NCBI GenBank assembly: GCA_004431415.1
Contig: QPMI01000162.1
Span: 108,153 to 172,152 of the forward strand
Direction of reading: 5' to 3'
DNA: 64,000 nucleotides
Source of the DNA: Cyanophora paradoxa CCMP329
Lineage: Eukaryota > Plantae > Glaucophyta
This document shows, piece by piece, positions 27,936 to 58,900 of the stretch. The first letter of the stretch is position 1. Every line of letters starts with the position of its first letter. A program made the translations under genes and the position numbers. Below the pieces are notes generated by a model that did no database searches, was not told the origin of the DNA, and saw only the letters and a program-made list of their open reading frames with translations.

Positions 27936-28070
27936 GGGGGGTGGCCGAGGCCAGAGGGGTGGCCGAGGCCGATGGGGTGGCCGAAGCCGGGGGGGGGCCG
28001 AAGCCGATGGGTGGCCGAAGCCGAGGGGGGGCCGAAGCCAGTGGGGGGCCGAAGCCATGGGGTGGCCGGA
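27936..28070 (+). repeat. Minisatellite, ~8 units of ~16-20 bp, core GGG(G/T)GGCCGA(G/A)GCC
   Basis: Tandem units read directly; no unique spacers. Confidence 0.85.
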
Positions 28071-28756
28071 GTCAAGCAATTGGCTTGGCTTGAAGCCGGG
28101 GGGGTCAAGCAGCAGGCGGCAGGCCTAGCCTTGTCAGCCTTGACCATGGCTTGACGTCGACTCGGCGGCGAGTCGCGATCGGCGACGTCGACTCGGCGCC
28201 GGCGGCCTGGCGGCAGGCCCGGCGGCCCCGGCGGCCCGGCCCGCCGCCGGCTGGCGGCGGGCGCCGGGGGCGGCTGGCCGGCGGCCTTGCCCAAGTTGAA
28301 CGGCCGCGGGCCTCGACTCCGGGCCTCGAGTCTCAGGGCCTCGACTCCATTGCAAGGACTTGAGAAAACTTGGTCGAAGGACTACTTAGCACTGAAACTT
28401 CTGACACAACTTGTTCAATCAGTGTTGTGGCGCCGGCACTGCGGCAGGCCTACGCTCGCACTGCAGTCTGCAGCAGCCTCGATCGCGATCGCACTGCGGC
28501 AGTCTCGCATTCGCATGCGCAGCCTCGAGAGCTCGAGAATCGCAGCCTGCAGCGTAGGGCCTGCAGGTGATTTGGCTAGCGAGCTGCCAGCTGAGCTACC
28601 GGTAGCAGCTGCAGCCTGCAGGCTGCAGGCTGCGAGTACCTTTACAACCGGTACCGCAGCGCGCGCTCAATTTGCAATAACGTGCACCCGCGGCTTCAAA
28701 GGCCGACATCATATAAGCAACAGATGCAAATTGCAATCGCAACTGCAGCTCGCAAG

Positions 28757-29598: not shown

Positions 29599-30798
29599 CT
29601 CAGCGGCTCCGTACTTCCCTGCCCCCCCCTAGTCCTTCTCTGATACCTTCCGTTTCACGAATCCGCCGCCCCCGGTCTCCGTCGAATTCAACCTTGCCTC
29701 CCGATGCCGATCCGTCCCCTGTCCATGTGTCTCGGCGCCTGCGGCTTTCCTCTCCTGTACCTTCGGCTTCCCCTCTGGCTGTCCCGCCAGATCCACCTCG
29801 CCCGCCGGTTCCTGCATGGCCCCCTTTGATTCATGATAGTCTTGTATCAATCTTCGCTTCACCTCAACTTAGTTTACCCTCAGTTGTTTTGCCGTCACCT
29901 CCATCAGATGCTTCATCGATGTTAGTTAGGAGCACTGGCCCCTCCACCTTCCAGTTCCTCGTGTATTCCATGCCTTCCCTGTACCTTTGATTCCGTTCCT
30001 TTGTCGTTAGCTCTGCCTCTTCCTCCTCCATCTCTCACTGTTAGCCCTCAGGCAGTTCCGCCTCTTTATCTTCAGCGACCGTCAGACCGTATAGTTTTTG
30101 GCAGCGAGTATTTTGTGTATGGTGACGTTCCTCGTGTGTACCCTTCTCTCTCTCTACTTCGCTATTTTGCCTCTCCCGCCTGGTTCAGCCCCATCGTCTG
30201 CCTTCCCTGTCACTACTGGCTTGCGTTTCGCCCCTCCTCTTATACTGCCGATTCCGAGTCTGCACCCGAGCTCTGCCCTTTCCTCGTGTCGTCCCAGTTC
30301 CTCAGATTAGTCTTCAGCCGTCCATTGTTTTACCAACTCTACAATCTCGATTCCGTTTAGACACTCCGCCAGCTTCGACTTTCCCCTCTAGTGGTGTCCT
30401 ACGTTTCGCCTCTCCTACTGTTCTACCGCCTTTGCCTCCTGCGACTACGTCTTCTAGTTCTGCTGTTAGCTCTGTCTTGTCGTCTTCGTCTAGATCTTCG
30501 TCTTCGACTGTAGTTCCTCGTGCTCGTTCTCCTTATTTGCTGCGTCCCCGTGCTCCTCGTCGTTCTAGTGTGACTAGTACTTCTGCATCGACGCCCTTGA
30601 GCTCTTCTACTCCTTCTCCTCGTGCTCGTTCTCCTTATCTTTTGCGTTCTTCTGATCGTGTCCCTTCTCGTGATCCCTCTTGATTCTGTATATATTTTGT
30701 GCTAGTTTACTGTATCTTTGATTTGTGATTGCTTTGTTGTCTTTAATATCACTACCTACGGGGGGTTCGCCCCACCGTAGTCTCTCAAAAAAAAAAAA
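29599..30798 (+). mobile_element. Family A non-LTR retroelement, 5'-truncated copy (1.2 kb)
   Basis: Near-identical reverse complement of 41642-42842; T-rich 3' UTR, terminal hairpin, A12 tail (30787-30798). Candidate TSD aagccccc at 29592-29599 and 30797-30804. Confidence 0.9.
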
Positions 30799-30884
30799 GC
30801 CCCCCCGCACCCCCCCATTTATAATTTTAATAATTGTTTTTTTTTTTTTTGGTGAATTACCGGCCACATTTTTTTTTTTGGTAA

Positions 30885-33008
30885 ATTACCGGCCACAGTC
30901 TCTAGACACCAGCACTGCGGGGGCTGCCCAGGGGGCATAAAGACAAAAAAGCAAAATAACTAAGACAAGAGCACGAAGAAAGATAAGACAAAGAGCCAAA
31001 ATCGACAATAAAAAAGAAAAGACACGGAGCTCGAGACAGATCGAGAAGAGACGAGAAATCGAGCAGATCTAGGGACAGAGGATGACTGACACGAAGAAGA
31101 GCCAGAGCGAGAGATACCATCAATATCGGAAGGAATGACATCACTAAGAAGCGGAGGACAAATTTGAGAAAGATAAATAACAGGAAGCAGACAAGTAAGA
31201 GGAACAACAAGACGACGCGGAGGCGGAGGCGAAGCAGGACGACGCGAAAGGGCAGAGCTACGGCACGAGGTCGAGGAAGACACAGGAGGCGGAGCAGGCG
31301 GATCAAGAGCAGGCAAAAGGACAGTCAAGGAATCACTAAAGCCGGCCGGGGTCGAGGCGGGCAGTCGAACTGCAAACGACGGCGAACAACAGGTCGAGCA
31401 CGAGAACTATAGCTAGTATTGAAACTAACTCTAGCATCAACACTACGATCAGAATCCGAGCTAGACCGAACTAAACTATAAGACGAAGTACGCCGGCGCC
31501 GGCGGGATACGACCAACGAAGCAGAAGACGAAGGCAAAGGCGGCGGTCCGGTAGCAAGAACAAAGGCCGGAGGTCCGGCCCGGCAAACCGCCGGAGGGAA
31601 GTAGAAGGAGACGCAGGCACGGCAAGCCGGCGACGGGTACGACCACGAGTCCGGGAGGAGATCGGGGAGCCGGTCCCGGAGCTGAGGGCCCAGGAGCAGA
31701 GCCAGGAGATCTAGAAGGTAAGCCCGGCGAGAAATCTGACCCGGAGCCGGAACCCAGCGAACGACGACGACGAAGAGGCCCCGAGGAGCCACGACGGGGA
31801 GCTACCGAGCAAAGTACTGACAGCCGGCGCCGAACACGGTGGCGGAGGTACCCCGCAGACAGTGGCAGGCGGAGAGTCCAGGGTCGATCGAGAGATCCGC
31901 CGACGGAACGCGGCGGAGGCCTACGAGACGGAAGAGGCGAGGAGGAGCCGAGGAAGGGTCGGATCCGGAGGCAGGGGAAGGGCCGCGAACAGGTGACGGG
32001 ATCGCTGCCGGCGCCGAAGAGAGGGCAGCGAAGCAGGAGAAAGGTCAGGTGGCGCCGGATCAGATGACACGGGGTCATGGGCGGCGCAGAGAGAGACGAG
32101 CTCGAGTGCGCAAGGGCCTGACGAGGCGCCGGCGGCGAATCTCACGAGCGCCAGGAAGCGGGAGAGGACCCGCAGATGGGACCCGAGGCGCCGAAGGGGA
32201 GCAGGGAGCCGGAATGACGGGGAGACCGAAAAGAGGACAGTCTCGCCAACACTCGGAAGCGGAGCAGAGGCGAGGACCGGAGCTCGAGGGGGGAGGGAGG
32301 GCGGAGGAGGAGAGAGAAGGCGGCTATTCGAAGGGTATGGAGAATCGAGAGCGGAGGCGAGGGAGGCCGAAGTGATGGCGAGCTCTGGAGGCGAGGGGGC
32401 CTGCAAGCGGACCCGGGAAAGTGGATGCAGACGCAAAGAAACCGGGACGTAGTGGCGGGAGGGCATGCAAAAAGATAGTGCCGCCCGGCGTCACAGTTGC
32501 AGAAGCGGGGGCAAGAAGGATGGGCTGAAGAGGGGGCTGAACCAGGAGGACGTCAGAAAGAGGGCCACGCGGGGGCGGAAGTGGAGGAGCAAGGGGAAGA
32601 GGTAAGAAGGGGTACGGAGCTGCAAGATGACCAGGGACCTGCCGGGGAACAGGCAAGTGAAGAGGCCCCGTGACAGCAAGTTGTAAGGAGGGAGGAGGTA
32701 GAGGCGGGGCCAGCGGGCCAAGGAGCACAGGGATCGGGACCGCAGGAATGGGGAAAAGGAGCGTCGAGAGGGGCAGCGAGAGCAGGAATAGGAACGGGCC
32801 CAAGGGTCACTACAGGGCCAGAGCAGGAGGGGACGGCGCAGGAGGCGGGCGACCACCAGGGATCCCCAACGGGACATTCCCACGAACGGCAAACTCCGCA
32901 GGATTCCGGAGGACAGAATCGATGTCTCGCGAAGAGACGAGGTTGTCAGCACCGCCCGAAGAAGGAGGGTCGGGCGAGTCAGATTCAGAGCTTGAACTAG
33001 AACGATGA
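30885..33008 (-). repeat. 2.1-kb direct repeat, copy 1 (3' part of family B)
   Basis: Matches 35276-37415 except scattered substitutions and homopolymer indels. Confidence 0.95.
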
Positions 33009-35275
33009 GAACCGGCACCAGACTCTGAATCATGTGCGTCAGCATCTGAGGCATCCTGATCATCAGCGTCAGCAGCAGCCAAGCGAGCGCGCCGCTCCTC
33101 CAACAAGGCCGAAGCCTGCGGGATGGTGAACTCTAGGTACGACATATTTCTGTCCCAGGCGGCAACAAGCGCGGCGCGGTTGTAAGAAGGTGCATCAATG
33201 TCAGCCTCCTCAAGATCGCACCGAGCGCGAGCAACCTGTTGGATGGAAAATACGCCAGCAAGGATCGCTCCAAGTGAGCGAAGGCAGAAGGCGGGGTTAA
33301 CTTTACTGCGCAAAATGGGCCCAGATAAATCCGGAACCGAGAGGATGTGGAAGAGAGAGAGGTCAGGCACTGCGACCTCTTCACGCTCCTCCGGTGGAAG
33401 AGTAGAAGCCCAGAAATTCAGGCGCTCACGAATGAAATCCAGAACGAACGAGAAAGCGGGCACTCAGAGAAAACGTGCGCGTGAGAGCGAGCAGATCCGT
33501 CATTACAAACCCGACAGAAACGACGGCGAGGCGACTGTTGCTCGCCCAAACGATACAATTTGAAATGCAAACGGTAAAGAGCATCGATCCAAAGCATCGG
33601 GAAACACTGAAGGACGACAAGATGAGGAAGACGGGACGGAGACAAGGCGCCGGGAAACCCCACTTAGCATCGGGCATCTGAGCGTGGCTAGACACATCGC
33701 GAAGCCGCTGGACCTCAAGGCAGTAGAAGCGACGAACAGATGAGAGGCGGAGAGGGAGCATACGAGCAAATGTGAACGCAAGATTATCAAGAGAAAGAAA
33801 GGCAGAGGGGCCTGCTCCTAGAATAAAAAGACCGGGCAGGGTTCCGCGACGTAGAGAGAGAAAGACAGCGCTAAAGCAAACGTGCAGCGGAAGCAAACGA
33901 GATAGAATTGAATTAGAGGATAGGCCCACAGGGTGGGAAGCCGCAGGGCGGCAAGGAACACGCGGCACGTAATCCAGCACCCGTGGAATTATCTGGTTAT
34001 CGCGAACGGGGAAGGCGACAAAAGTACCGCTCGGGCCCCGAAGGAGAGCAACCGAGGCGTCCAGTCCAGACCACCAGAGATGCTGAGGTGGCGGGGCAGG
34101 GGCCTCAAGGACCTGGCGCCATGCTGCCGGGAGCGCGGAGCACAGCCGAGGGAAAAAGGAATGGAGGGCGGACGAGGCAGCTGCTGGAGCCCGGAACCCC
34201 CGGGTGGTACAATCCCAGATATCGCAGACTCGCAGCAAGCCAGACCGTGCACAACGACTCCAGTCGACCTTGGCACCCGGAGCATCGAACAGGGGATTAA
34301 AAAAAAGAGGTTGGGATAAAACTTCGAGCGAGGTATGAGGCTGACACACGCCCTGGCGCTGAGACCACTCCGAGAAAGCCTGCTTCCAAATAGAAGGCAA
34401 GTCAAGACCGTCAAGTGGGAGACGAAGCGAGATAAGGGCGGGGCCGTAGGAAAAGGGCGCCAGCTGAGCGTCCAGTTTGCTCAAGAGGTACTCCTTCCAA
34501 GGAGCCGAGCAGGACGGGTCGGCCAACAAGGCCACCCACTTCATTTTTAGCGACAGAGAAAAGGCACGAATATCAGGGCAGTTAAGACCACCTTGACGCC
34601 ACGGCAGAGGAGAAATATACTTCGAAAGTTGCCCGCTCACGCCGGCGAAAGAACGAAGCTTGTCTTGCCACGCAGAATACTGGGCATCAGGGGGGTCAAG
34701 CAAATACAGAGCATAATGAAGGGATCCAATAAAGACTGCCCATGCAAGAAGCACGCCGGAACGCATCGGCATGTGATAGGTTTTCGCTTGCTGCACACGG
34801 ATATCAAGAGCAGCATTTTTCTTACGCCAGAAGCGAGACAGATCGGGCTCAAGTGGAAAGCCCAGGTACTTGCGGATTTTCTCAGCGGGAGGGAGATCCG
34901 TCACCTGGAGACGCCGCCAGGGACAGTCCTCGACGCTAGGCCACGCGTCCGCAGGAATATCGCAGAGCGGAAGAAGGTTAGATTTGTCGAGATTAATAAG
35001 GGCGCCAGACAGCCGGCAATATTTATCAAAGCACTCTTTCCAAAAGGGTAGCTCGGCAAAAGAAGAGATTAAAGGAACAGTATCGTCCGCGAACTGGAGT
35101 ACCTTACATAGGGAGTTAGGAGAAAGGCGGACACCACGTATACGCACGTCAGCATTAATCAGAAGGGCTAAAAGGTGCGTGCACAAATTATACAAATAGG
35201 GAGACAGGGGGCCACCCTGACGCACTCCGCATCGAATGGGGAAAGGGGCCGAGGTCCAGCCGTTAATGTGAACAG
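30960..35275 (-). pseudogene. 5'-truncated LINE ORF2: RT C-terminal half, CCHC zinc finger, acidic linker, long Pro/Ser/Arg tail
   Basis: SVHINGWTSAPFPIRCGVRQGGPLSPYLY, LQFADD (FADD at 35082-35093), SGALINLDKS, KYLGFPL, QGGLNCPDI, CRVC..HAHVFSEC (~33461-33517). A few 1-bp frameshifts; no endonuclease or ORF1. Confidence 0.9.
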
Positions 35276-37415
35276 AATTACCGGCCACAGTCTCTAGACA
35301 CCAGCACTGCGGGGGCTGCCCAGGGGGCATAAAGACAAAAAAGCAAAATAACTAAGACAAGAGCACGAAGAAAGATAAGACAAAGAGCCAAAATCGACAA
35401 TAAAAAAGAAAAGACACAGAGCTCGAGACAGATCGAGAAGAGACGAGAAATCGAGCAGATCTAGGGACAGAGGATGACTGACACGAAGAAGAGCCAGAGC
35501 TAGAGATACCATCAATATCGGAAGGAATTACATCACTAAGAAGCGGAGGACAAATTTGAGAAAGATAAATAACAGGAAGCAGACAAGTAAGAGGAACAAC
35601 AAGACGACGCGGAGGCGGAGGCGAAGCAGGACGACGCGAAAGGGCAGAGCTACGGCACGAGGTCGAGGAAGACACAGGAGGCGGAGCAGGCGGATCAAGA
35701 GCAGGCAAAAGGACAGTCAAAGGAATCACTAAAGCCGGCCGGGGTCGAGGCGGGCAGTCGAACTGCAAACGACGGCGAACAACAGGTCGAGCACGAGAAC
35801 TATAGCTAGTATTGAAACTAACTCTAGCATCAACACTACGATCAGAATCCGAGCTAGACCGAACTAAACTATAAGACGAAGTACGCCGGCGCCGGCGGGA
35901 TACGACCAACGAAGCAGAAGACGAAGGCAAAGGCGGCGGTCCGGTAGCAAGAACAAAGGCCGGAGGGTCCGGCCCGGCAAACCGCCGGAGGGAAGTAGAA
36001 GGAGACGCAGGCACGGCAAGCCGGCGACGGGTACGACCACGAGTCCGGGAGGAGATCGGGGAAGCCGGTCCCGGAGCTGAGGGCCCAGGAGCAGAGCCAG
36101 GAGATCTAGAAGGTAAGCCCGGCGAGAAATCTGACCCGGAGCCGGAACCCAGCGAACGACGACGACGAAGAGGCCCCCGAGGAGCCACGACGGGGGAGCT
36201 ACCGAGCAAAGTACTGACAGCCAGCGCCGAACACGGTGGCGGAGGTACCCCGCAGACAGTGGCAGGCGGAGAGTCCAGGGTCGACCGAGAGATCCGCCGA
36301 CGGGAACGCGGCGGAGGCCTACGAGACGGAAGAGGCGAGGAGGGAGCCGAGGAAGGGTCGGAACCGGAGGCAGGGGGAGGGCCGCGAACAGGTGACGGGG
36401 ATCGCTGCCGGCGCCGAAGAGAGGGCAGCGAAGCAGGAGAAAGGTCAGGTGGCGCCGGATCAGATGACACGGGGGTCATGGGCGGCGCAGAGAGAGACGA
36501 GCTCGAGTGCGCAAGGGCCCGACGAGGGCGCCGGCGGCGAATCTCACGAGCGCCAGGAAGCGGGATAGGACCCGCAGATGGGACCCGAGGCGCCGAAGGG
36601 GGAGCAGGGAGCCGGAATGACGGGGAGACCGAAAAGAGGACAGTCTCGCCAACACTCGGAAGCGGAGCAGAGGCCAAGGACCCGGAGCTCGAGGGGGGAG
36701 GGAGGGCGGAGGAGGAGAGAGAAGGCGGCTATTCGAAGGGTATGGAGAATCGAGAGCGGAGGCGAGGGAGGCCGAAGTGATGGCGAGCTCTGGAGGCGAG
36801 GGGGCCTGCAAGCGGACCCGGGAAAGTGGATGCAGACGCAAAGAGACCGGGGACGTAGTGGCGGGAGGGGCATGCAAAAAGATAGTGCCGCCCGGCGTCA
36901 CAGTTGCAGAAGCGGGGCAAGAAGGATGGGCTGAAGAGGAGGCTGAACCAGGAGGACGTCAGAAAGAGGGCCACGCGGGGCGGAAGTGGAGGAGCAAGGG
37001 AAGAGGTAAGAAGGGGTACGGAGCTGCAAGATGACCAGGGACCTGCCGGGGAACAGGCAAGTGAAGAGGCCCCGTGACAGCAAGTTGTAAGGAGGGAGGA
37101 GGTAGAGGCGGGGCCAGCGGGCCAAGGAGCACAGGGATCGGGACCGCAGGGAATGGGGGAAAAGGAGCGTCGAGAGGGGCAGCGAGAGCAGGAATAGGAA
37201 CGGGCCCAAGGGTCACTACAGGGGCCAGAGCAGGAGGGGACGGCGCAGGAGGCGGGCGACCACCAGGGATCCCCAACGGGACATTCCCACGAACGGCAAA
37301 CTCCGCAGGATTCCGGAGGACAGAATCGATGTCACGCGAAGAGACGAGGTTGTCAGCACCGCCCGAAGAAGGAGGGTCGGGCGAGTCAGAATCAGAGCTT
37401 GAACTAGAACGATGA
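35276..37415 (-). repeat. 2.1-kb direct repeat, copy 2 (3' part of family B, no poly(A))
   Basis: Runs from aattaccggccacagtctctagacacc to gaactagaacgatga, as in copy 1. Confidence 0.95.
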
Positions 37416-41000: not shown

Positions 41001-41641
41001 AAGATCTAGACGTCAACGCATACGATTGCGAGCGCTGATTGCAATTATTCGCTGGATTCCCCGGAGCTGCTGTTATGCATGCGCATTAAAATTGCGTCCT
41101 TCATGATCAAGTTCGTGGCGTGCTGTCAGCAGGATCCGGACTCGAGCTCAGATAATTAGAATTTCGCGCACCTGTACATGTACGTACACATGTATACGTA
41201 GGGGGCAAATAAACGGGCGCCGCGCGTTATTAAAGAGGTCAAATTAATTAAAGGGCAGAGGGCACAAGTGTTGAGCCGGGGCAGTCGCACGGGGCTGCGC
41301 ATGCGCATGCGCACAGCAGCGCTTAAGTTTGTTGGCGTCGCATATGCGTTGAACATCATGGCATCAAACCATCGTTAACGTTCACAGGAGCATCGGCCTT
41401 GGGGGAAGGAAAAATCTGAGGTTCAACGGTTGGCTCCTATCTTGTGGCAATTTTCGAAATGCGAAATTCTGTATCAACGAAGACACCTATAGCTACTACC
41501 CAATTTTCAACCTTGGGGATGCCGTCGGTCTGGCCCGTTAACGTTGTCCTATGAGAGGTCTCTAGATCTGATGCATTTGTGCAGTAACAGCACGCCGAGA
41601 AGCATTTTTCCTTAAAAAAACAAATAGAAAGCGCGAATCAC

Positions 41642-43398
41642 TTTTTTTTTTGAGAGACTACGGTGGGGCGAACCCCCCGTAGGTAGTGATATTAAAGACA
41701 ACAAAGCAATCACAAATCAAAGATACAGTAAACTAGCACAAAATATATACAGAATCAAGAGGGATCACGAGAAGGGACACGATCAGAAGAACGCAAAAGA
41801 TAAGGAGAACGAGCACGAGGAGAAGGAGTAGAAGAGCTCAAGGGCGTCGATGCAGAAGTACTAGTCACACTAGAACGACGAGGAGCACGGGGACGCAGCA
41901 AATAAGGAGAACGAGCACGAGGAACTACAGTCGAAGACGAAGATCTAGACGAAGACGACAAGACAGAGCTAACAGCAGAACTAGAAGACGTAGTCGCAGG
42001 AGGCAAAGGCGGTAGAACAGTAGGAGAGGCGAAACGTAGGACACCACTAGAGGGGAAAGTCGAAGCTGGCGGAGTGTCTAAACGGAATCGAGATTGTAGA
42101 GTTGGTAAAACAATGGACGGCTGAAGACTAATCTGAGGAACTGGGGACGACACGAGGAAAGGGGCAGAGCTCGGGTGCAGACTCGGAATCGGCAGTATAA
42201 GAGGAGGGGCGAAACGCAAGCCAGTAGTGACAGGGAAGGCAGACGATGGGGCTGAACCAGGCGGGAGAGGCAAATATAGCGAAGTAGAAGAGAGAGAAGG
42301 GTACACACGAGGAACGTCACCATACACAAAATACTCGCTGCCAAAAACTATACGGTCTGACGGTCGCTGAAGATAAAGAGGCGGAACTGCCTGAGGGCTA
42401 ACAGTGAGAGATGGAGGAGGAAGAGGCAGAGCTAACGACAAAGGGAACGGAATCAAAGGTACAGGGAAGGCATGGAATACACGAGGAACTGGAAGGTGGA
42501 GGGGGCCAGTGCTCCTAACTAACATCGATGAAGCATCTGATGGAGGTGACGGCAAAACAACTGAGGGTAAACTAAGTTGAGGTGAAGCGAAGATTGATAC
42601 AAGACTATCATGAATCAAAGGGGCCATGCAGGAACCGGCGGGCGAGGTGGATCTGGCGGGACAGCCAGAGGGGAAGCCGAAGGTACAGGAGAGGAAAGCC
42701 GCAGGCGCCGAGACACATGGACAGGGGACGGATCGGCATCGGGAGGCAAGGTTGAATTCGACGGAGACCGGGGCGGCGGATTCGTGAAACGGAAGGTATC
42801 AGAGAAGGACTAGGGGGGGCAGGGAAGTACGGAGCCGCTGAGCAGGTGGCGACGGTGAGGGTGCAGGGGAGCGAATCCGTCGCAAAGTCGGAACAGGCTG
42901 ACGGGGCTCGGCATATGTAGCCGCAGCTGCAGGAGCTGGAGCAAGCACTGGGGTGCCGGATCCGGAGACTGGAGGCGGGGGCGCTGGGCAGGAGGCACAG
43001 GATCTGGAGGATTCTCTGAACTAGAGGGGTTCGAGGTCGGCGAACGCCACGGGCGTTAGCAGGATGTTTATCAGCCCGAACATGACGGTCACGATCAGCA
43101 GAAGACTGAAAGTTCTTCCCACAAATAGGGCATATTAATGTGGAGGCAGAAGCGGCGCTAGCGCTAGCATCGGCAGACGAGCTCAAACGAGAACTCGAGG
43201 GAGCCGGGACCGAAGCTGTATCAGCGCTAGCAGATGGCCTCGCAATGTGCTGAACTTGAGGATTCACGCCGACGCCATTAACTGTAGCAGCAGGCCTAGG
43301 GGTAGCGACTGCAGGGGGGCCCGGGACCGCGACTGCTGGGGGGCCCGAGCGCTGTAGAGGGATAGCTCCGCGCACAGAAAAGAAGCTCGCATCAAAAA
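41642..43398 (-). mobile_element. Family A non-LTR retroelement, 1.76-kb copy with 14-bp TSD
   Basis: T10 (poly(A)) at 41642-41651; TSD aaagcgcgaatcac at 41628-41641 and 43399-43412; same 3' 1.2 kb as 29599-30798. Confidence 0.93.
41755..43375 (-). pseudogene. Family A terminal ORF fragment: C2H2 zinc finger plus Ser/Pro/Arg-rich tail
   Basis: CPICGKNFQSSADRDRHVRADKH, Cys cluster CSSSCSCGYIC, TGPLHLPVPR, duplicated PRARSPYLLR, ends RDPS*. Frame breaks at homopolymers. Confidence 0.7.
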
Positions 43399-44347
43399 AA
43401 AGCGCGAATCACGATCACATTGGCCTTTCATGATCAAGTCAAATTTCTAAAAATATGAAATTGAAGAGGCTGCGCCCCATGGCCATTCCGAAGTTCGATT
43501 TCGCTACGAGACAATCTCCGTATGGATTCAAATGATTGTAACTTATTTAACAGAGGGCGACGTGGCCGATCAGAAAATTTGTATGAGACACGGTCGAAGT
43601 GACCTACGATGTGGGATTTAAAAGTACTTCAAGTTTGCACGATGCGTCAATTAAAAGAGCCAAGGGCCCCCATGGCGCCAAGACCCCACGCAAGGGCCAA
43701 GGCCACTCCTGCTCCGCAGAGACTCGACTGTTTTATTTACGAGCCTCGAGCTCCGATCATGACTCAGTAAGCATTAAATTGAACTGCGGTGGCGACGATC
43801 GCGAGGGTCGGAGGCCCTGATCATAATCATGATCATGGCGGGAGCTTTCAAGTTTGAATCAGGCTTAATTGATCGTGATCATAAGCGGGGGCCGGGCAGA
43901 TTGCATATGCACGAGCGGGGACAGCCCGCGGCCCTACAGCTGTGCGTATGCATGATCATAACACGTGCAAGTGCACGTTTTGCATGCATATGCAGCTGCA
44001 GCGAGCTGCGAGGCCTAGGCCAGCCTATGCATATATATGCAATCGACATCGTATATCCCCGCGGCCGTACCCCTAGCCTCGTCTCGTCGACCTGCGTCGA
44101 CCTGCGACGCGTCGAGGGGTACGTCCCCGCGCCAGGGCCACATGTATACGTACAGCTGCAGGCGCACGACTCTGTGACGACACAGGTCGGCGCCTTGGGG
44201 CATGTTGGGGCGCCGCGGCCGGGCGACCTGGTCGCAATATCGATGCCGAGGAGTCCTAAAGGGGGAAAGCCTTGAAGAAGAAGCCTATGTATCTACTGTA
44301 CACCTGCAAGAGCTCTATCTGAAAAAATCCGATCCCGCCAGGCGGCG

Positions 44348-47300
44348 CTACCTGCTCTCGAGGCGCTGGCGCTCGCGGGACTGGGGGCGGCTGGAGGAGC
44401 GCGAGGCCGGCCGCACCGACCCGACGCTGACCGAGTCCGCCAGGTCGCTCGGCGGCGCGCCCGAGCGCTTCCCGGACGGGATCGCCTCGACGAAGCTGCG
44501 CGGCCTGCTGGGCGCCGGCGAGCTCGAGCCGGCGGCGGCGGCCGGCTGCTGCTGGCGCTGGGGGCCCGGGCCGAGGCGGTGCTGCTGCTCGGCGCGCTGG
44601 CGGTAGGCCTCGAGCACGGCGCGCTGCTGCTGCGTCCCCGCCGCGGCGCTCCGCTCCAGCTTCTCGACGAGCTCGGAGAGCACCCGAGTGCTCGCGTACG
44701 TCCGCCTGCGCATGCGCGCCCCCCGGCGGCGCCGTGAGCCGCCGCCGAAGGAACGGAGGAGGGAAGTAAGGAAGGCACCTGAGCTCCTCGAGGAAGGCCC
44801 TGGGGTCCTGGTAGGCCGCGGCGAGCTCCGGGGTGTGCCGCCCCTTGTCCAGGATCTGCTCCACCAGCGCCTCTGCGCCCGCACGCGACGCCGCCGGGGC
44901 CCGATCAGCCACGCTCCGCCCGCAGGCGCGGGGCGCGGGCGGGGGGCCGGCCGGCCGGGCGCACGGGCGTCGGCGACGGTGCGGGCCTTGAGCAGCATGT
45001 CCGCGTACTCTGCGGGGCGGGGGGGGGGGGGGGGGGGGGGGGGGTGGGGGGGGGGCGGCTCAGACAACCCGCCGGGGGAAAATAAATCTCTGATGGCTCT
45101 AAGTATCGAGTTTCACCGGCGGGGATCTTGTAGCTCCTGCCCTCGGCGGCGAGGCTCGGCGCCTCCTCCCTCTCCGCCTGCGCCGAGGCCGCCGCGGAGC
45201 CGCCGACGGACCCGAGGAACCGCGAGAAGCCTGCGCCGGATCGGAGTGGGCGGGGGCGGGCCGCGGGCGCCGGGCATCTGAATCTGAGGCTAGCGCGCAC
45301 CCTCGGCGCGGAGGTTGGAGGCGGACGAGCGGCTGGGGACAGCGGGGGCGGGGGCGAGGCGGGAGGAGCTCGACGAGGGCCGCAGCGCCTCCTGCTCCCA
45401 CCGCAGCACTGCGCCCCCCGCCGCCGCCGCCGTCAGACGCGGACAGGCGGCGGGGGCGCCCCCCGCCCGCCCGCCCGCCCGGCCGCACCTTCGTCCTTCT
45501 CCTCGATGAGGCTCATGCGGGCCGCTTGTTGCTGCGGGGGGGCGGACGGGCCTCTCTCTCAGCGCCTCAACCTCAGCAGAGCGAGAAGGCCAGCGGACCG
45601 CGGGGCTGGGGCCCTCGAAGGAGGAGGAGACCTCGAGGCGGGGGAAGGACTGCCCGTGCGAGGGCCGCCGCTCCAGCGCCCTCGGCGGGCTCCCGGCGGC
45701 CCGCGGGCCCAGCGGCGCGCGCCCCTTCGAGAGGGTCCCCCGCGGCCGCGACCCCGCCCGGCTCGGCGGCAGCTCGGGGACCTCGAAGTCCTCGGGGTAC
45801 TCCTCCCGGGGCGCGTGCACCTGCGGCCCGAGTCGGATCAGCGAGGCGAACGAAGGGAGGGAGGGTGGGGGTTGGAAGGGACGCTGGGGCGCACGCCGGG
45901 CGGGGGCGCCGGCCTGTCCTCCTCCTCCTCCCCTTCCGGCGCGGCGCGCGCGCCCCGGGCCGCCTCTTCCTCCTCCTCCTCCGCCGCCGCCGGCGCGTCG
46001 AGGGGCGGCAGCTGCACGCGCGGGCGCTCCTCGACCTCGCCCTCGCCCTCGGCCAGAGCTGCCGGCAGCTCTTCGCCGGAGGCGTTGAGCTCCTCGGCAG
46101 GCGGCTCGTCGCGCCGCGACTGCGGGGGCGAGGGCGCGCTGGTGGCGGCCGGGAGGGCCGGGAGGGCGGAGAGGTGGATGGTGGTGGAGGTGGAGGTGGT
46201 GGTGGTGGTGGCGGCGGCGGCTTGGTGGGCGTGGGACGGGACGGCGGCCGCCTGGACGAAGGGCAGGACGTCGCGCCTGTGCCCCTCGAGCTGCCCGCCA
46301 GCAGCGGCGAGCGACGCGCGGCGCGCGAGGGCCGCCGCCGCCGCGAGCTGCTCGAGGAGGGCCGCGTGCGGCGGCGGCGGGCGGGCGGCTCGGGGCGCTG
46401 TCGACGAAGGGGAGGACGAGCGAGGCGTCCCCGCCGGCGGCGGTGTGGGGCCGGACTTTCGTGATCCAGCCCGTCTCGGCGATCCCGTCGTCCAGGTCGA
46501 AGACGCCCCGCTCCTGCGCCTGCGGCGCCCGCGCCGCGTGCCCGATCCGCCGCTCCTGCGTCCGCGGCCGGGCGGCCGCCTCCGCGCCGCGCGAGGGCAG
46601 CGCCCGCGGCGCGGCCCGCGAGAGGGGGCGAGCCAGCGCTAGCGGCTGCGGCTGCGGCGCCTGCGGCGGCGTCGCGTCAGGGTTCGCGCGAGTGCGAGGG
46701 TCGGTCGCGCGGCGCGCTCGCCTGGGCGGTGTGCATGAGGTTGATCTGCCTGACCGCCTCCAGCTCCTTCTCCTTCTCGGGGTTCCTGGGCTTCGGCGGC
46801 ACGAACCGCGCCTGCGGCTGCGGCCGCGGCGGGTGCTGCGGCGGCCGATCCCGCGCCGAGGGCAGGGGCCGCCTCGCCGTGGCGGGCTTGGCGGGGGCGG
46901 GCGCGAGGAAGGCGGGGGGCGGCGAGAGCCGCTGGAGCTCCTGGAGGACGCCCACGTGCACGGCGATGCCGATGGGCTCCAGCGCCGGCGCCGGCGCGGC
47001 CAACTCTTCGGCGCGCGTCGGGCTCGCGCTGCGCGGGCGGGGCTCCTCGGCCGCTGCTGCCGGGGGCCAGAGGGCCGGGGCCCGCTGCTGCGGCTCGAAG
47101 TTGAGCATCTGCTCCGCGAAGGTGGCGAGGTCGTCGGCGGCCTCCGTCGTGTGGAAGACGCGCGCCCAGTCCAGCCCGGGCACCTCCCCGCCTCCCTGGC
47201 CCGCCTCCCGGGCCGGCGCCTCGGGGAAGTCGTCCCCCAGCAGCCGCTCGCCCGGCGGGAAGGCCGCCTCGTCGGCGTGGGGGAGCCCCGCGGCGGGCTG

Positions 47301-50300
47301 CGGCCGCGCGCCGGGCCGGCGGGCCGCCCCCGCGGCTCCCGCCTGTCGAACGGGAGGGGCTGGCCCTGCGGGAAGTGCGACGACGAGGCGGGCGGGCTCG
47401 CCCGCGGCTGCCAGCGCCCGAGCATCGGGGCCGTCTGCGGCGGGGGCGGCGGCGGCGCGTCGGGGAACGCCCAGTCCTCCTCGCTCGGCTCCTCCCCCTC
47501 GAAATCGGCCAGGGCGAAGTTCTGCCGGAAGCCGGAGCCCCCCGGCGGGCCCGAGAAGGCCGGCTCGGCCCCCATGGCGGCCCCCAGGTTGGAGGCGGGC
47601 CCGACGCGCCGGCCCTGCAGCACGCCGCCCATGACGAGGCCGCCGGAGGCCTTCGTGGAGTAGGGGGCGCCCGAGGGGCCGGGTGCGCCGGCGCCGGGGG
47701 GCCGCCCGAAGGACTGCGGGGCGCTGGGGAGCTGGTGGAAGCTGGCGACGGGGACGATGGCCTCGTCCGTGAAGGAGGAGTGCTGCACGGCGTCGCGGCC
47801 CTGCAGCACGTACGTCCCCGTCTGCTCCAGCCGCTCCCGCTCCTTCAGCGCCGCCTCCGTGTTGCGCTCCAGCTGCTCGAGCCAGTACGCCATCTGCTCG
47901 TCGTGCATCTGCCCGTGCCGCTGCGCCTCCTCCAGCAGCTCGATCTGCGCCCGCCCTCAGCGCGCGGCGCGCGGGGCGGCGGCTCCGATCCGAGGCGTGT
48001 ACTTCTCATTCACCTGGCGCTGGATCTTGGCGCGCTGCCGGGCGATCTCCTGCAGCTGGAGCTTCTCGTGCGCCGCCGCGAACTTCTCCGCGAAGCCGAA
48101 GAGCGCGGCCGGCTGGAGCTCGGGGTGCCCCTTGTCGAGCCGCCCCGCCGACGGCAGCCTCTCCAGCTCCCCGCTCCCGACGCCCCCGCCCTCGCCGCCG
48201 CCGCCCCGCGCCTTCGCCCTCGCGGCGCGCTCCTGCGGCGAGGCCTGCGGCTGGGGCGGGAGGGAGGAGCCCCCCGTGGAGGTGGACTGCTGCGACCGCG
48301 GGCGCGAGCCGACCGAGGGCGTCGACTGCCGCCGCTCCTGCTGCGAGGCCGGCCGCCCGGCGCCGGCGCCGCCGGCGCCGCCGCCCTCGAGCTCCTCCGG
48401 GGCGTCCTCGGCCCAGGGCGAGACGTCCCCGCCGGCGCTGCCCTTCCGCTCCGCGCCGGTGCTGGCGCCCGCGGCCGGCGCGGACGACTGCTGCTGGCCG
48501 CGGGCGCCGCCCTCCGCCCCGTCGAGGGGCCCCAGCGACGCGGCGGAGAGGAGCGCTGCCTCCTCCTCGGTGAGCTGGTACGACCTGCGCCGCGGGCCCG
48601 GAGTGAGCGCCGCCGCCCGGGCAGACCGAGCGGAACAAGTCCAGCGCTCTCCGGGCGCACGGGTCCATCGCGACGCGCGCCGCGAGCTCCTCGGCCCACT
48701 CGGCGCTCCCGGGCGGCTGCTGCCGGGACAGCACCACCGGCGCGGAGGGTATGGGCCCCGCCGGGGCTTCCCTCTGCGCGCGCGCCGACTTCGCGCTCGC
48801 GTGCCTGCTCCCGCTCCGCGTGGTCGACGCGGAGGAGCCGGGGCGGGAGACCGGCTGCTCGCCCCACCTGCGCGCAGCGGTCAGCTTATCCTTCCCGTCA
48901 AGGCGGCGCGGGGCGCGCCATTTGTCCTCCAGCATGGCCAGCTCCTCGAGCGAAGGCTGCTCCCGCGCCAGCGCCCTCTGCGTCCGCTGCGCCGTGCTCC
49001 CGCTGCTCCTCGGGCGGCCCGCGGCGCCCGCACCGGCGCCGGGCAGCTCGATGGTGCCGGCGTGCTCGAACATGCTGGCCGCCGCGTCCGCCTCCTCCGA
49101 CGCGAACGCCGGCTCGACGCGCGCCGGCTCCGCCCCCGCGGGCTCCGCCTCGCCGTCGGCCTCGAGGGCGGCCTGGGCCTGGGCCGCGGCCGAGGCGGGC
49201 CTGTCCGCGTCTTGAACCGGCGGCTCCCCCTCCTCCGCCGACGCCTTCGCGACGAGCCCCCGCTCCAGCAACCGCCTCCTCCGCCTCTCGAGCCTCTGCA
49301 GCCTCTTCCTCTCGCGGTACGCGGCCAGGCCTCCCGCGCGCGTCAGCTCGCACGGACGGTTCTCGCTGCGCGAAAAGATGCTTACCGGCCTGGGCGGTTT
49401 CGATGTCGGACGATCCGTACCGGCCAAGATACCTGCGCCGCGGAAACGCTCTCGATAACCACAACAAGCCGACGAACGGGAGCGAGCGCGCACAGGGCGA
49501 GGGCCCTCTGCCATGTCCCGCGCTCGACCGAGGACGGCAGCGAGTTCTGGGCCGCGCGGTACAGGCCCTCCAGCAGCTTCCGCCGCCCTGCGTCGCATTG
49601 CGCCGCGCCGGTGAGCACGCGGCCCGGCCGAACGGCGATTCGGGAACGACGCGCCTCTGTCGTCCAGGGTCTCGAAGGAGGAGCCCTCGGGCGGGGTCGC
49701 GACGCCGTCGAGCCCCCTGAAGATGTCGGGGAAGCCCGCCTCGAAGGCGCGGCCGGCGCCGGCCCCGAGGAGGGACCCGAAGTCCAGCCCCGCCCCCACC
49801 TCCTCCTCCTCGTCGCTCTCGCTCGCCTCGCTGTCCGGGTCCCCCTCCTCTTGCTCCTCCCCCGGCTTCTTCCCCTCGGCGGGCTGCACCGCCTCCTCCT
49901 CCTTCGCCTCGGAGGCGGGCCGCGACTCCGGCCGCTCCTCCGCATCCGCCGCCGAGGGCGCGGAGGCCTCGGGAGGGGTCGGGGCCGGGAGGGGCGCCTC
50001 GGCTCCGCCCGCGACGGCCGCGGGCGGCTCGGGCGTGTCAGGGATCGAATCCGCCTCCTGCGCCGCCGGCTCGGCCTGAGCAGCGACCGCCGGCTCGGCG
50101 GGCGAAGGCGCCTCGCTGGCGACGCCCGCCGCCGCTGGCGCCTCCCTCTGCTGCTTAGGACTCTCCTTGGTCGGTGCTTCGGGCGCCGGTTCAGGCGCGA
50201 CAGCGGGCTTCGCCAGCTCGCCCGCTCCCTGCTTGATGGAGGATGCGGAACCGTCGGCCTGCTTGGTCTGCTGGGCGGAGGCGGGGCGCGATTCCGCGGG

Positions 50301-53300
50301 CGGCGCGACGGGGCGTGCCGCAGGTGCCGGGTGGGGCGCTGGTTGGGAAGACGAAGCGGCCGCGCCGCCGGCTGGAGTCGAACTTCCAGCGGCGGCCTTC
50401 GGCTGTTCCTGCGCACGCGGGAAGCTAATCGCATCCTCATCGGTGTCAGGCGCGCGCAAGGCACCTTGGGTGAGGGCAAAGGAGATTCGTGCTTCTTGCC
50501 GGCGGCGGCCGACGTCGAAGGCTGCGCTGGCGCCGCTGGCGACGGGGGCTTGTAGCTGGACGCTGGCGGTGAAGCCTGCGCCGGAGACACCGAGGGCGGG
50601 GACCGCTGAGGAAGGGAGGGGGCCTGCTTCGCGACCGCGGCGGGAGGTGCGGGCACCGGCTTCTGATGATGGGGCAGGTTAACCACGGCCAAGGACCTCG
50701 ACGTCAAAGAAAACGAGACGGACGGAGTATTTCGAGATCGAAGTCGGGAGCTGCGGCTTCGGAGCCCCCGCGGCGGCGGCCACGGCGGCCGCGGCCGGCG
50801 GCGGCGGCTTCGCGTCAAAGGAGACCCTGCCAGCCGCCGCGGTGCCCGCGGCCGCTTTCGCCCTCTCCTTCGCGGAGGACGTCGTGGAGTGGGGCGACTC
50901 GGGCTCGTCGGACTTGGACGGCGCCGGCCGGCTACCCCCGATCTCCCCGAAGAAGGCGAACTGGAAGAGCGCAGTCTTGACGGTCGCCCCGCCCCGCAGG
51001 CTCGCCGGCGACGCCGCCTCCGCTTCCTCCTCCTCGGCCGACGCCTCCGGCTCCGGCTCCGGCTCGGGCGCCGCCGGCGCCGCCGGCGCCGGCGTCTCTG
51101 GTGCCGTCTCTGGTGCCGGCGCGGGCGACCCCGCGCTCTGGGGTGCCTCCTCCGCCTCCTCCGGGTCCTTCGTCGGGCTCGCGAACGAAGCGAACGAACC
51201 GAAACGCTCACCCCTCGCCTCGCCCTGGAGGACGCGGCCCCTGCCGCGCAGCTCGATCGCGCGGAGGACGTCGGCCTTCTCCATGAGCTTCAGCTCCAGG
51301 CTCTGCTTGTACTCCTCGACCAGCTCTCTCGACCCCAGCACCTCTGCTCTCCGCGTCACGGCAGGCGAGGAATGCCAAGACTTCGAACAGAAGAGTGCCG
51401 CACCACGTCTCGCGAGCAAGCTTTTGCTCTCCTGCTCGGGGCCGTCATGATCACGCAGGGAACCGGAACGGATCGCGGAGGAGAAGCGAATTTCGAACCT
51501 CCAAGCGCAGCAGCTCAAGGCTCCCGGACTCTTCGATCCGTTTCCTGCGAGCCTCGTCCTTCGCCTGCTGCTCCCGCCTCGTCTGCGACGCAGCGCGTGA
51601 GCCCTCTCAAAGTATGCGCGCGGCGTTCTCGTTCTCTTCACGATTCGCGGCTCGAGCTCGCCTTGCGCAGGAGGATGGAGCACATGCGCCACATGAGGAC
51701 GGAGTTCAGGTTGCGGATGTCGGAGGCCACTTTCCGGATGTCCGTGCTGTTGTACCGCGCGAGCGCATCCAGCGCTGTCTCTTGGAAGCCTAGCGCGGCG
51801 GGCCGGAGTTAGAAACCGATTGTTTTTCACACAGCGAGCGAGAGCGAGAATGCGCAGGGCACCCTCGCTGTCGAGGGAGAGGTTTGCGCGCTTCTGCAGC
51901 GCGGCGACGACGCGCGCGACGACGCCCGGGTCGACGCGCATGGGTGCCGGGATCTTGTCCAGGCGCTTCCCGCCGGCCTGCTTCGGGCAGACGTCCCTCC
52001 ACCCGGCGAAGCACAGCTGCTTCCACTTCTGCTGCAGGTGCGATCGCTGCCAGGCGATGAGCTTCTCGAACGTGACTCTCCGCTGCAGCGAAGATCAAAA
52101 GAGAATATGAATGCGCCACAGACGGGCAGAGCTGGCACCTGCGCCCGCCCGGTCCACGCCCGCCAGCACTTGTGCATCACCCAGTTCATGCGGCAGAACT
52201 GGCCCTCGAAGCCCTCGTCCAGGTGCGACCGCCAGGCCGCCACCGCGTACGAGAAGGCGCTGCTCGTCGCCGTCGCCTGGAGCAGCCGCTCCAGCCCCAC
52301 CGCGCTCACGATCCCGTCCGCAGAGGCGTTCTGCGGGGGCGTGAGGCGCGAGGCGGCGCTGATCATCACTAGTGAGCAAGGCCGGGCACCTGCTTCCACT
52401 TGTCCATTGCAAAGAACAGCCTTGAACGAGCCGAGTAATTATAATGTCGAATAAATGCGCAGGGGCGACGAGCTCAGAAGCGGGGCGCACCGGTTGTTGT
52501 TCACGAGGTTCTGCATGTTCTTGATCAGCTTGTCCTGGCGCCGCTTCTCCTTGACGAAGGCCGAGAGGGACAAGAACATGACCCGCAAGCGCTGCGGGCA
52601 GCAGCCGTCAATCGACACGCGGCGCGTCGCCCCGGGAAGAGCGCACGTGGCGCTGCGCGATGTCGAATTTCTTGACTTGGCACCAGTCGCGGAACGGGGC
52701 CTCCATCACAGCGCGGAAGTGGAATTTGATCGCCCTCCTCATCTTCTCATGCAGAGCCCTGTGAAAGAAGAAAGTCGGAACAACGCGGAGGCTGAGAGAG
52801 GAGAAGCCGCGGACGGACCGCGCTCGGGCTATGAACGCTTTCCACTGCAGCCACCTCCCTGCAATGGGCTCAGAGAAGAAAGATAGATGGGCCGTGATCG
52901 TGATCGCGGGCGCACGCTTCCTCACGAGCTTGGCGTAGTCGTCCCGCAGCCTCTTGTCCATCTGCTTCCTCCGCTTGTACTTCTCGATCCATGTGTCCCT
53001 GCGATCGAGTTGAGCGGGAGGTCCGGGATCCTCAGCGGAAGGGGGCGAACGACGAACCACTGAACGATGACGGCGCCTTTGAACTCGGCCAGCTGGGTGT
53101 TCTCGGCCTCGGCCCGCTTGAAGAGAGCGTAGCGGCACCACATGGTCATGACGAGGCGCGTGCGGCGCGCGGAGGCTCGGATGGCCAGCGTGTTCAGCTT
53201 TAGGTAGGCCTGCTTTCTCCGCGCCTTGACGTGGTTCTTGAACGCCTGCAGCTGCTTGAGGGATGTCTTGAGGCGGTAGCGCCTGATCCGCTCCGGCATC

Positions 53301-55968: not shown

Positions 55969-58900
55969 ATGCCGGACCTGCTCGACTACTTCGCGCGGGA
56001 GGAGGCTCCGGAGGAGCTGTGCGAGCCGAACGCCGCGCGGCGCGTGCCGATGCGCGACCCGGTTGTGATGCCGTCGTACGTCGCGCCGCGTGCGGGATGC
56101 GCGGGCCGCGCTGACGCGTACGGCCGGCGCCGGGCCCAGCGGCGAAACGTACGACCGGGCGACGATCCTGGCGGCGGGCGAGGACCCGAGCACGGGGGAG
56201 AAGGTCAGCGCGGAGGCGGCGGCGGCGCTGACGACGAACAAAGCGGTGGCGCGGGCGGTGGGCAAGTGGCTGCGGCGGCGGGCGGAGGAGCTGGCCGGGC
56301 GCCTGGAGGCGGCCCGCACGGAGGAAGCCCTCTCTTCCCTCTGCGACCTGCTCCCGCACCTCGCTCCGGCCCCGGCGGCGGGCGGCCCTGCGGCCCCCGA
56401 GGGCGCGGCGGAGGCGGCGGCGGCGCTGGCGCGGGCGGCGGAGGCGGCGCTCGGGCGCCCGGGGCCGCGAAGGGCCTGCGGCGGCTCGCTCCGTGGCCCC
56501 GGGCCGCCCTCCTGCGGGACTACGCCGCCCTCGCCGCCGCCGGCGCCCGCCTCGCGCCCCTCGCCCGCCTCGCCGACAGTACGCCCTTTCCCTCCAGTTT
56601 CCCCCGTCTTTCCCAAACCCCAAAGCAGATGCGGAGGCTGTCGAGTGGCTACCGGGGGCGCTTCTGGAGGGGGGTACCCCTGCGCCCCTCGCGGACGCAT
56701 TTCTCGCGGGGGACGCCGACGCCCGCCGCGTACGTACCCCGCCTCTTTCCCTCCCCTCGTCCGGCTGCCACCTGAGAGGGGGTACAGATCCTGTGCCGTG
56801 CGGTGGCCGCGGCGGGGAGGGGGGAGGGGGGCTTGGACCCCTCCGCCGCCCTCCCGGCCGCCTTCCTTGCCGCATGCGATCGTGCGTACCCCCTCCCACT
56901 CCCCCACTCATCTCCCGTACCCCCTCCAAACCCCGCCCCGCAGCGCCCGCGCTGGCCGCTCTGCTGGAGGCGGCTGAGGCGCGCCTTTCACTCCTCCCCT
57001 GTCCGCTCGCCGCCTCTTAACCCCCACAATTCTCCCCCCCGTAGGAGGCGGCGGAGGCGAATCCCTCGCCCGCCCCCCTCGCGCTGCTCGAGCGCCTCGT
57101 ATCGCACCTGCTCCAGGCGCGCTTCTCCCGACCCGCCTCCGTACCCCCCGCCGACCCGCCTTCGCCCGCCCCGCCCCCGCAGGCGGAGGGCCGCCCCGCC
57201 GGCGACGCGCTCCGACCGGCGGCCCTCGCCCGCGTGCTGACCGCCGCCGGCGAGCCCCTCTCGCGCACCCTTTCGCGCCCTGCACTGACTCGCGGCCCCG
57301 CAGGCGCCGAGGGCGCCGAGGCCGGCCCCGCCGTCGCCTCCTGGACGCCCTCCTCGCCGCAGGTACCCCCGCCCGTCCCCCCCCGCTTCGCTACGGCGAC
57401 CCCTGCGCAGGCGCGGCGGCCGGGCTGGCCTCGCCCCCCGCCCTCGCCGCCCTCCGCGCCTTCCCCGCCGCCGCCCGCCCCCTCGTGGACGCCCTTCAGG
57501 TACCCCCCTCCTCCCCTCTTCCCTCCTAAAGCGGTGCCTGCTGCTCAGCGAAGCGCAGCGCGCGGCGGCGGGGGCGGCGGGGCGGCCCGCGGGCGCTGCC
57601 GCCATTCGCGTGCTTTCCGCCGTCTGCAGTGCCGGTATCCCTGGCACCGCCCGCCCCCCAGCAAACGCCTGAGCCGAGCCGCGTGCAGAACCGCGGTGCA
57701 GCGAGGCGCTGCGGGAAGGTGCGGGGGCCGCCTTGCCGCCTGCGCCGGGGCCGGCGGGGCCGGGCCGAGGGGCGCGGGGCGCCAGGGCGACGGAGGGGCG
57801 CTGGAGGCGCTGGCGGCGGCCGTCGCCGAGGGGACGACGAGGCCGAGGCCCGCCCCCGCCCCGGCCCCGCCTCCGCGCCTCGCCTCGGCCCTAAACGCAC
57901 GATCGGGCGGGGCAGGCGCTGGCGGAGGCGCTGATCCGGGCGGGGCGCTGACGGGGGCGCGGGCGGAGGCGCTGGCGCGCTCTGCGCCCTTCTTCGTGCG
58001 GCGCGCCCTCGACGGCGTCGAGCGCTCCCTCCTCGCCGCCAAGGAGGTGCCCGGGGGCCCGCCGCCCTGCCGCCCCGCCACCCCGCCGCCTCGGCTCTGC
58101 GCCGGCCGATCGACGTCGCGGGGCAGGCTGGGGAGTACTCGCGCCTCCTCACCGCCGCCCTCGCCCTCGTCCACGTGCCCCGCCCCTGCGCCCGCGCCCT
58201 TCTCCCCCGTCCCGGGCTAACGCCCGCGCCAGTCGGCGCCGCCGGAGGCCGCCCCTGAGGCCCGCCGCCGCCTCGTGCGCCCTCCCCCTCCCCGCCCCGC
58301 CCCTCCCCACCCCAACTCCGCCCGCCCCCCTGGACTCGCAGGCCGACTACGTCTCCACCCGCGTCGTCTTCGGTGCCCATCCCCCTGCCTCCTCCCCCCG
58401 TACCCCCCTCCCCTCACCCACCCGCCCCCTACCGCAGCGAACGTGGCGGACTTCGGGGCCCTCTTTTCGGCGCTGGCGGCGCTGGCGGCCCCGCCCGACG
58501 CCCCCGCCCTCGCCCTCCTCCGCGACTGCGGCCCGCCCGTACCCCCCGCAGCCTCCCCTCCGCCGCCCTCTTACCGTACCCGCCCTGGCAGCGGCGTACT
58601 ACGGGACGGGGGCCGCCCCCGCCGCCTCTGACGCGGCGCCGCTGGGCCTCCCGCCCTCCTCGCCCCGGGCGCCCCGACGCCCCGGCCCGCGCCGCCGCCG
58701 CCGCCCTCGCCGCCCAAGTAAGGCCCTTCCCCCGCGCCCGCCGGATCCGCCGCGGCGCGGGCTCACGGGCGGGTCGCAGCTGATGCTGCGCTTCCCCTCC
58801 CTCTCCGTGGCCGAGCTCGCCGGGCCCGACCCCGCCGCCGCCGCCCTCGTCCGCCCCTGCCCCGACCCACGCCCCCGCTCCCCTCCCGCCCTGGGCTCAC

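Follow-up and report, generated by a model that had tools for sequence, protein, structure and literature searches.

A conserved ten-residue island in the proline-rich ORF2 tail of L1-like LINE families of the glaucophyte Cyanophora paradoxa

In a 64,000-nt stretch of the Cyanophora paradoxa CCMP329 genome (contig QPMI01000162.1; hereafter the window, to which all coordinates refer) two retroelement families, A and B, encode the same decapeptide, TGPLHLPVPR, in their 3′ parts by largely different codons. How two such tails came to carry one peptide, and what it might do there, are the questions that this locus raises. The codons and positions proved to be exactly those given in a preliminary description of this DNA:

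32642–32671, minus strand: family B copy 1, acg ggg cct ctt cac ttg cct gtt ccc cgg
37046–37075, minus strand: family B copy 2, DNA identical to copy 1
42481–42510, minus strand: right copy of family A, act ggc ccc ctc cac ctt cca gtt cct cgt
about 29932–29960, plus strand: inverted (left) copy of family A, frame broken, C missing at 29938

Between A and B all 10 residues are the same, while 8 of the 10 codons and 9 of the 30 bases differ, every difference being synonymous. A degenerate-codon pattern of the peptide matches the window at the three minus-strand sites only (0 matches expected in window shuffles); the left A copy is missed because of the single absent C at 29938, which the short-read contigs identify as an assembly deletion.

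The self-comparison of the window revealed a 1.2-kb inverted repeat (29599–30796 versus 42842–41642) and a 2.1-kb direct repeat (30884–33008 versus 35276–37415). A DIRS- or Penelope-like element with terminal repeats (the 1.2-kb inverted plus a 4.4-kb direct repeat) was considered and rejected, the repeats being two opposed insertions of A and two tandem copies of B. The features of both families are as follows (P0001 is a protein of a third family, described below):

41642–43398, minus strand: right copy of family A, a 5′-truncated LINE; ORF open from the truncation point, stop at 41755, 3′ UTR hairpin, poly(A)
43399–43412 and 41628–41641: 14-bp target-site duplication around the right A copy
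43028–43132, minus strand: C2H2 zinc finger of the A tail, 61% identical to the P0001 finger
42400–42531, minus strand: conserved core of family A, 44 codons (motif and Pro/Phe/Leu block ending LPPPSL), 70% identical to P0001
29599–30796, plus strand: left copy of family A, more 5′-truncated, with poly(A)12; only 9 single-base homopolymer indels relative to the right copy
30884–35275, minus strand: family B copy 1; reverse transcriptase (RT) from motif 4 on, zf-RVT-like knuckle, tail of about 825 aa, poly(A) at 30874–30883
33645–35273, minus strand: B reverse transcriptase and thumb region, 49% identical to P0001 residues 684–1233
33439–33624, minus strand: B zf-RVT-like Cys/His knuckle, in a frame different from the RT frame in the assembly
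33080–33499, minus strand: B post-knuckle domain, 33–35% identical to P0001 residues 1276–1423
32570–32725, minus strand: B counterpart of the conserved block (LPPP, motif, then a Pro-rich stretch), from the alignment with P0001 and A
35276–37415, minus strand: family B copy 2, tail only, head-to-tail with copy 1, without poly(A) at the junction
35355–36728, minus strand: B distal tail, a Ser/Pro/Arg-rich open frame of 458 codons (equivalent in copy 1 at about 30963–32330)

Both A and B end in poly(A), as LINE 3′ ends, and both are 5′-truncated; since this holds for all four copies, the endonuclease is invisible in the window. The word depth of both families in public short-read contigs ranges from thousands to above 100,000 and climbs towards each 3′ end. 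A and B are abundant, very high-copy, 5′-truncated LINEs. In family B, Pfam recognizes RVT_1 (E 1.3e-9), the best PDB match is L1 ORF2p, and the Cys/His knuckle pattern CxxC...H...C is present. The Pfam zf-RVT matches of this analysis (E 0.0013 and 0.0021) remain below the gathering score. The A tail contains two SPYLLR; B is without the C2H2 finger that A and P0001 carry, and apart from this finger no Pfam domain was found in the tails.

The ends and surroundings of the copies have further peculiarities. The two B copies meet head-to-tail at 35276/35275 without poly(A), the 3′ end ...ggccggtaattc continuing straight into RT-internal sequence, and at the true B 3′ end (30831–30883) the last ~19 nt with the poly(A) are present twice, a sign that the RT may have switched templates or primed repeatedly. 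Only ~35 bp (30797–30830) separate the left A copy on the plus strand from B on the minus strand, the two insertions facing each other tail-to-tail next to a C-rich near-palindrome, gcccccccgcaccccccc, that may be a preferred target or a coincidence. The 3′ UTR hairpin of family A (41658–41683) lies directly before the poly(A) and is likely an RT recognition element; this terminus is kept at 6680–6697 of L003, the contig encoding P0001, as ACTACCTACG[G/C]GGGGT, and the 3′ end of B differs from it. About 7 copies of a 17-bp tandem repeat with GGGGTGGCCGAAGCCGA-like units occupy 27957–28075, at the edge of a low-GC island. The flanks at 44000–51000 and 56000–64000 have 75–82% GC and contain ORFs of 600–900 codons, with several frames and both strands open; none of these flank ORFs gave a Pfam match, so ORF length alone is meaningless there.

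Reading frames required particular care. Nine single-base homopolymer indels, and no substitutions, distinguish the two A copies, and about 22 of the 39 sites that differ between the two B copies are indels of the same kind. At all testable sites the short-read contigs carry the longer homopolymer state (0 other letters, 2–4 gaps). Many apparent frameshifts in the window are 1-nt assembly deletions in C or G homopolymers, and because such indels are frequent the reading frames of the window are unreliable; ORFs and apparent frameshifts in this assembly need checking against reads. Frames were rebuilt by merging the two copies of each family and taking the longer state; database queries used the unaltered window sequence only. 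Merged A has a 195-codon frame with the C2H2 finger and a 422-codon frame with the motif (stop at 41755), and keeps one uncorrected shift at 43020–42812. In merged B the RT frame has 634 codons; a second frame, of 465 codons, contains the motif at codon 266, and a third, of 458 codons, stops about 80 nt short of the poly(A). Merged B keeps one uncorrected shift at about 32330–32080. Open frames of 422–465 codons arose in 1 of 1000 base shuffles for A and in 10 of 1000 for B, and B holds two of them. In a tblastn comparison P0001 aligns collinearly with B copy 1 across three frames, with switches near 33640 and 33460, as single-base assembly deletions would produce.

The connection between the two families was provided by P0001. 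Neither the A block (queried as residues 20–110 of a 290-aa ORF and as a 103-aa piece) nor the RT ORF of B gave a match in word-index protein searches, the index being limited by its length window and by word sharing. An exhaustive HMMER search with a 347-residue open stretch of the A tail retrieved exactly one protein, P0001, from 1.84 billion representatives (E 3.4e-13). The preliminary description had proposed such a profile search, together with a check that matches sit downstream of L1-type RTs, and in this single match the motif does stand behind the RT. P0001 is one uninterrupted 2084-aa ORF2 on the 6.7-kb Logan contig L003 (run SRR31724264), with the Pfam domains Exo_endo_phos at 7–241 (E 1.7e-12), RVT_1 at 559–821 (E 7e-27) and a weak zf-RVT at 1269–1300. 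Among solved structures, human L1 ORF2p matches it best (1e-42, over endonuclease and RT); R2 reaches 1e-17. The tail behind the knuckle, ~785 aa long, contains a C2H2 finger and, at residues 1789–1798, VGPIHIPVPR. As to the early doubt whether the motif lies in the RT frame of a full-length element, it does so in P0001. Pairwise comparisons gave the following identities:

A tail versus P0001 tail block: 45% over 161 aa, E 4e-18
A zinc finger versus P0001 zinc finger: 61% over 33 aa, E 4e-12
B RT versus P0001 RT: 49% over 557 aa, E 9e-163
B post-knuckle domain versus P0001: 35% over 134 aa, E 4e-21
B motif block versus P0001: 47% over 34 aa, E 4e-4

P0001 is thus like A in its tail, C2H2 finger, PPVPAWPP, VPRVYP, SPYxLR end motif and 3′ UTR terminus (common to A and L003), and like B in its RT and post-knuckle domain. 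It represents a separate family: its tail is 45% identical to that of A and its RT 49% identical to that of B, and at the DNA level nothing in the window matches it. The islands common to A and P0001 are PPVPAWPP, PL[YF]L..P.DR, VPRVYP and SPYxLR. The last of these, the C-terminal motif of both, was sought in B, where just a loose SSYSLVR was found (not significant). In the alignment of A, B and P0001 (alignment A1) the motif residues G, P, H, P, V, P and R are invariant (7 of 10), with conserved Pro before and after the motif, which is the sole island common to all three families. The A–B similarity had also been described as extending beyond the ten residues. For the A–B pair the similarity downstream of the motif is weaker, scoring 22–24 bits, within shuffle noise when taken alone; it is clear once P0001 joins the alignment.

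Because the RT of P0001 resembles that of B and its tail that of A, the three families are, as judged from their sequences, diverged branches of one endonuclease-type, L1-like LINE lineage, in which the motif was inherited in frame with the RT. The RT of family A lies outside the window, and the kinship of A and B therefore rests on the bridging protein; the reading frame leading to the B motif is fixed by the match of the B post-knuckle domain to P0001. The proposed kinship of A with the L1-type family B is thereby borne out (B-like RT joined to A-like tail, finger and 3′ UTR in the bridge). The further suggestion that the block may define an undescribed LINE group is, with P0001 as the one outside relative in the data searched, no more than conceivable. 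The expression "two dissimilar families" was an overstatement, A and B being diverged members of one lineage, and with a shared lineage the motif is inherited and less surprising than first claimed.

The label L1-like is given on the strength of the domains and of human L1 ORF2p as the best structure match. Like L1-type LINEs (human L1; plant and algal L1-like elements with zf-RVT), the lineage has 5′-truncated copies with poly(A) and target-site duplications, and its ORF2 combines an N-terminal APE-type endonuclease (seen in P0001) with an RT that carries FADD and a putative Cys/His knuckle towards the C terminus. Unlike L1-type ORF2, it adds about 785–825 residues after the knuckle. This extension consists of a ~130-aa conserved domain and a tail rich in Pro, Ser and Arg with conserved islands; in A and P0001 it also includes the C2H2 finger. 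Another difference from L1-type LINEs is the lack of an evident ORF1: the 382 nt that precede ORF2 on L003 (1–382) contain none that is recognisable. In the literature we found no account of Cyanophora LINEs or of such a motif.

Substitution patterns were used to assess selection on the tail. Between A and P0001, the 119-codon tail block has a pS of 0.72 (saturated), a pN of 0.31 and a dN/dS of about 0.17, and the 44-codon core has a dN/dS of 0.14; the dN/dS comparison of the A and P0001 fingers, and that of the B and P0001 RTs, came out likewise. For family B, high-frequency subfamily variants in read contigs were counted. In the distal tail these are 13 synonymous to 9 non-synonymous, versus 9 to 35 in the two wrong frames (59% versus 20% synonymous; Fisher p 0.0025). 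In the proximal tail, which includes the motif region, the counts are 7 to 12 versus 11 to 27 in wrong frames, with no synonymous bias in this sample of 19. The earlier assertion that the tails are translated and under purifying selection stands: the position of the motif in the RT frame of a 2084-aa ORF, the dN/dS of about 0.14–0.17 and the synonymous bias of the B distal tail demonstrate, at the level of comparative analysis, a tail translated in frame with the RT and subject to purifying selection.

The best explanation of the whole, which we hold to be probable, is a single L1-like lineage with an inherited and selected tail island that would serve as a docking motif. The ORF2p of this lineage runs past the RT and the zf-RVT-like knuckle into a ~130-aa conserved domain and then into 600–800 Pro/Ser/Arg-rich residues, probably disordered. 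The ten residues, with the consensus [TV]GP[LI]H[LI]PVPR, LPPP before them and a Pro/Phe/Leu block after them, are the best-kept island of this tail, derived from a common ancestor and held by protein-level selection, with the DNA diverged to saturation at silent sites. In a further, inferred step, the island may act as a short linear docking motif for a putative binding partner, supplied by the host or found elsewhere in the ribonucleoprotein of the element itself, that would be needed for retrotransposition, e.g. for nuclear import or tethering at the target.

Alternative explanations concern both the origin of the match and the nature of what is conserved. A chance match in Pro-rich, C/T-rich low-complexity DNA with all frames staying open has the base composition on its side: A makes up 10–13% of the coding strand, so all frames are long and rich in Pro, Ser and Leu. 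Moreover, the 10-mer alone reaches an E of only 0.11 in composition-corrected BLASTP, and A and B have another 9-residue match, PPGSAPSSA (A 42264–42238, B copy 1 32549–32523; 30 bits), with 23 of 27 nt the same, including 14 in a row. As a conserved motif PPGSAPSSA was rejected, being out of frame with the decapeptide in B (with a TGA two codons upstream) and missing from P0001; the match is probably a coincidence, though its DNA identity exceeds that of any other A–B stretch. Against chance as the source of the decapeptide, shuffling the residues of both tails 900 times, globally or in windows of 20–40 residues, gave a longest common peptide of 9 residues once and otherwise of at most 8. The composition-weighted ungapped score of the 10-mer, 37.4 bits, was not approached by the null maximum for the nine frame pairs together, which has a mean of 24.2, an sd of 2.0 and a highest value of 29.3. 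In all JGI metagenome contigs the degenerate pattern has one match, which ends in Ser and runs antisense to a bacterial gene; the 596 Gb of prokaryote genomes searched also contain a single match, antisense to a 606-aa bacterial gene. Given this rarity in shuffles, metagenomes and prokaryotes, the peptide is no common product of Pro-rich DNA; the preliminary description had named an equal occurrence in unrelated DNA of this kind as evidence against the motif, and nothing beyond these two antisense matches was found. In addition, the third family has the island at the homologous place, inside the significant 161-aa alignment. A chance match between the A and B motifs is already refuted, and we attach practically no weight to it. 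Very improbable, too, is that an RNA or DNA cis-element is conserved rather than a peptide. The block does belong to the 3′ half of the RNA, a usual place for cis-signals in LINEs, but all nine A–B differences and most A–P0001 differences are at silent positions, the nucleotides are just 70% identical where the peptide is identical, and the distance from the 3′ end is about 0.9–1.8 kb.

Instead of descending with the whole element, the tail block might have moved between unrelated LINE families by template switching or LINE RNA recombination, leaving mosaics. The B–B junction without poly(A) shows template switching or tandem priming in family B, no family A RT is present in the window, and the finger of A and P0001 is missing in B, all of which could be read in this way; on the other hand, the block DNA is 30% diverged between A and B and the silent sites are saturated between A and P0001, so any exchange would be ancient, and both the single P0001 ORF with its B-like RT and A-like tail and the post-knuckle domain common to B and P0001 are what vertical descent predicts. 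We consider such an exchange unlikely. To the possibility that ORF2p forms a small folded domain or a metal site of which the block is part, and that the block is not a linear docking motif in a disordered region, we assign a similarly low probability. A fold would account for the invariant His and Pro, for the conservation over about 44 residues between A and P0001 and for the weak strands about 50 residues downstream in an AF2 model; that same model, computed from a single sequence and weak evidence for disorder, has a pLDDT of 45 (below 50) and no secondary structure at the motif, there is no Pfam match, the tail has 22–24% Pro with few hydrophobic residues, and the flanks of the B 10-mer are almost unalignable.

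The tails in which the island lies contain 19–24% Pro, are Ser- and Arg-rich and are net basic. For a short linear motif the criterion is a conserved island in fast-changing flanks, and here 7 of 10 positions are invariant in three families while the A–B flanks are within shuffle noise. We regard an interaction role as plausible. To our knowledge, the motif fits no SH3, WW, EVH1 or MYND consensus, and an ESM Atlas feature search with the P0001 block returned noise only (best score 0.83, to FHA clusters).

Docking by small parts of retroelement enzymes has precedents established by experiment. The PIP box of human L1 ORF2p is a short docking motif for the host protein PCNA (PMC10830420), and small targeting domains of the Ty1 and Ty5 integrases bind the host proteins AC40 (a Pol III subunit) and Sir4, respectively (PMC7459421). 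The island in the Cyanophora tails resembles them in being a small set of conserved residues within a presumably flexible region of an enzyme; unlike these cases it is known from sequence alone, and with its dissimilar sequence the likeness is one of working principle only. A bolder version of this reading, offered tentatively and in our estimate rather doubtful, is that a glaucophyte L1-like lineage without an evident ORF1 built an ORF2 tail of ~800 residues that would do the jobs of ORF1p or of host adaptors, the finger and the Arg/Ser stretches acting as a nucleic-acid chaperone and GP[LI]H[LI]PVPR representing a new proline-type class of docking motif for an essential host factor.

The prevailing view of LINE function is not overturned by this finding. 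The host belongs to a deep-branching photosynthetic lineage whose transposons are almost undescribed, and the 10-residue island is usable directly as bait for the element's partner. Overall, the very long stretch of low complexity that follows the RT in an abundant LINE of this alga turns out, by comparative analysis, to be selected coding sequence and not 3′ UTR.
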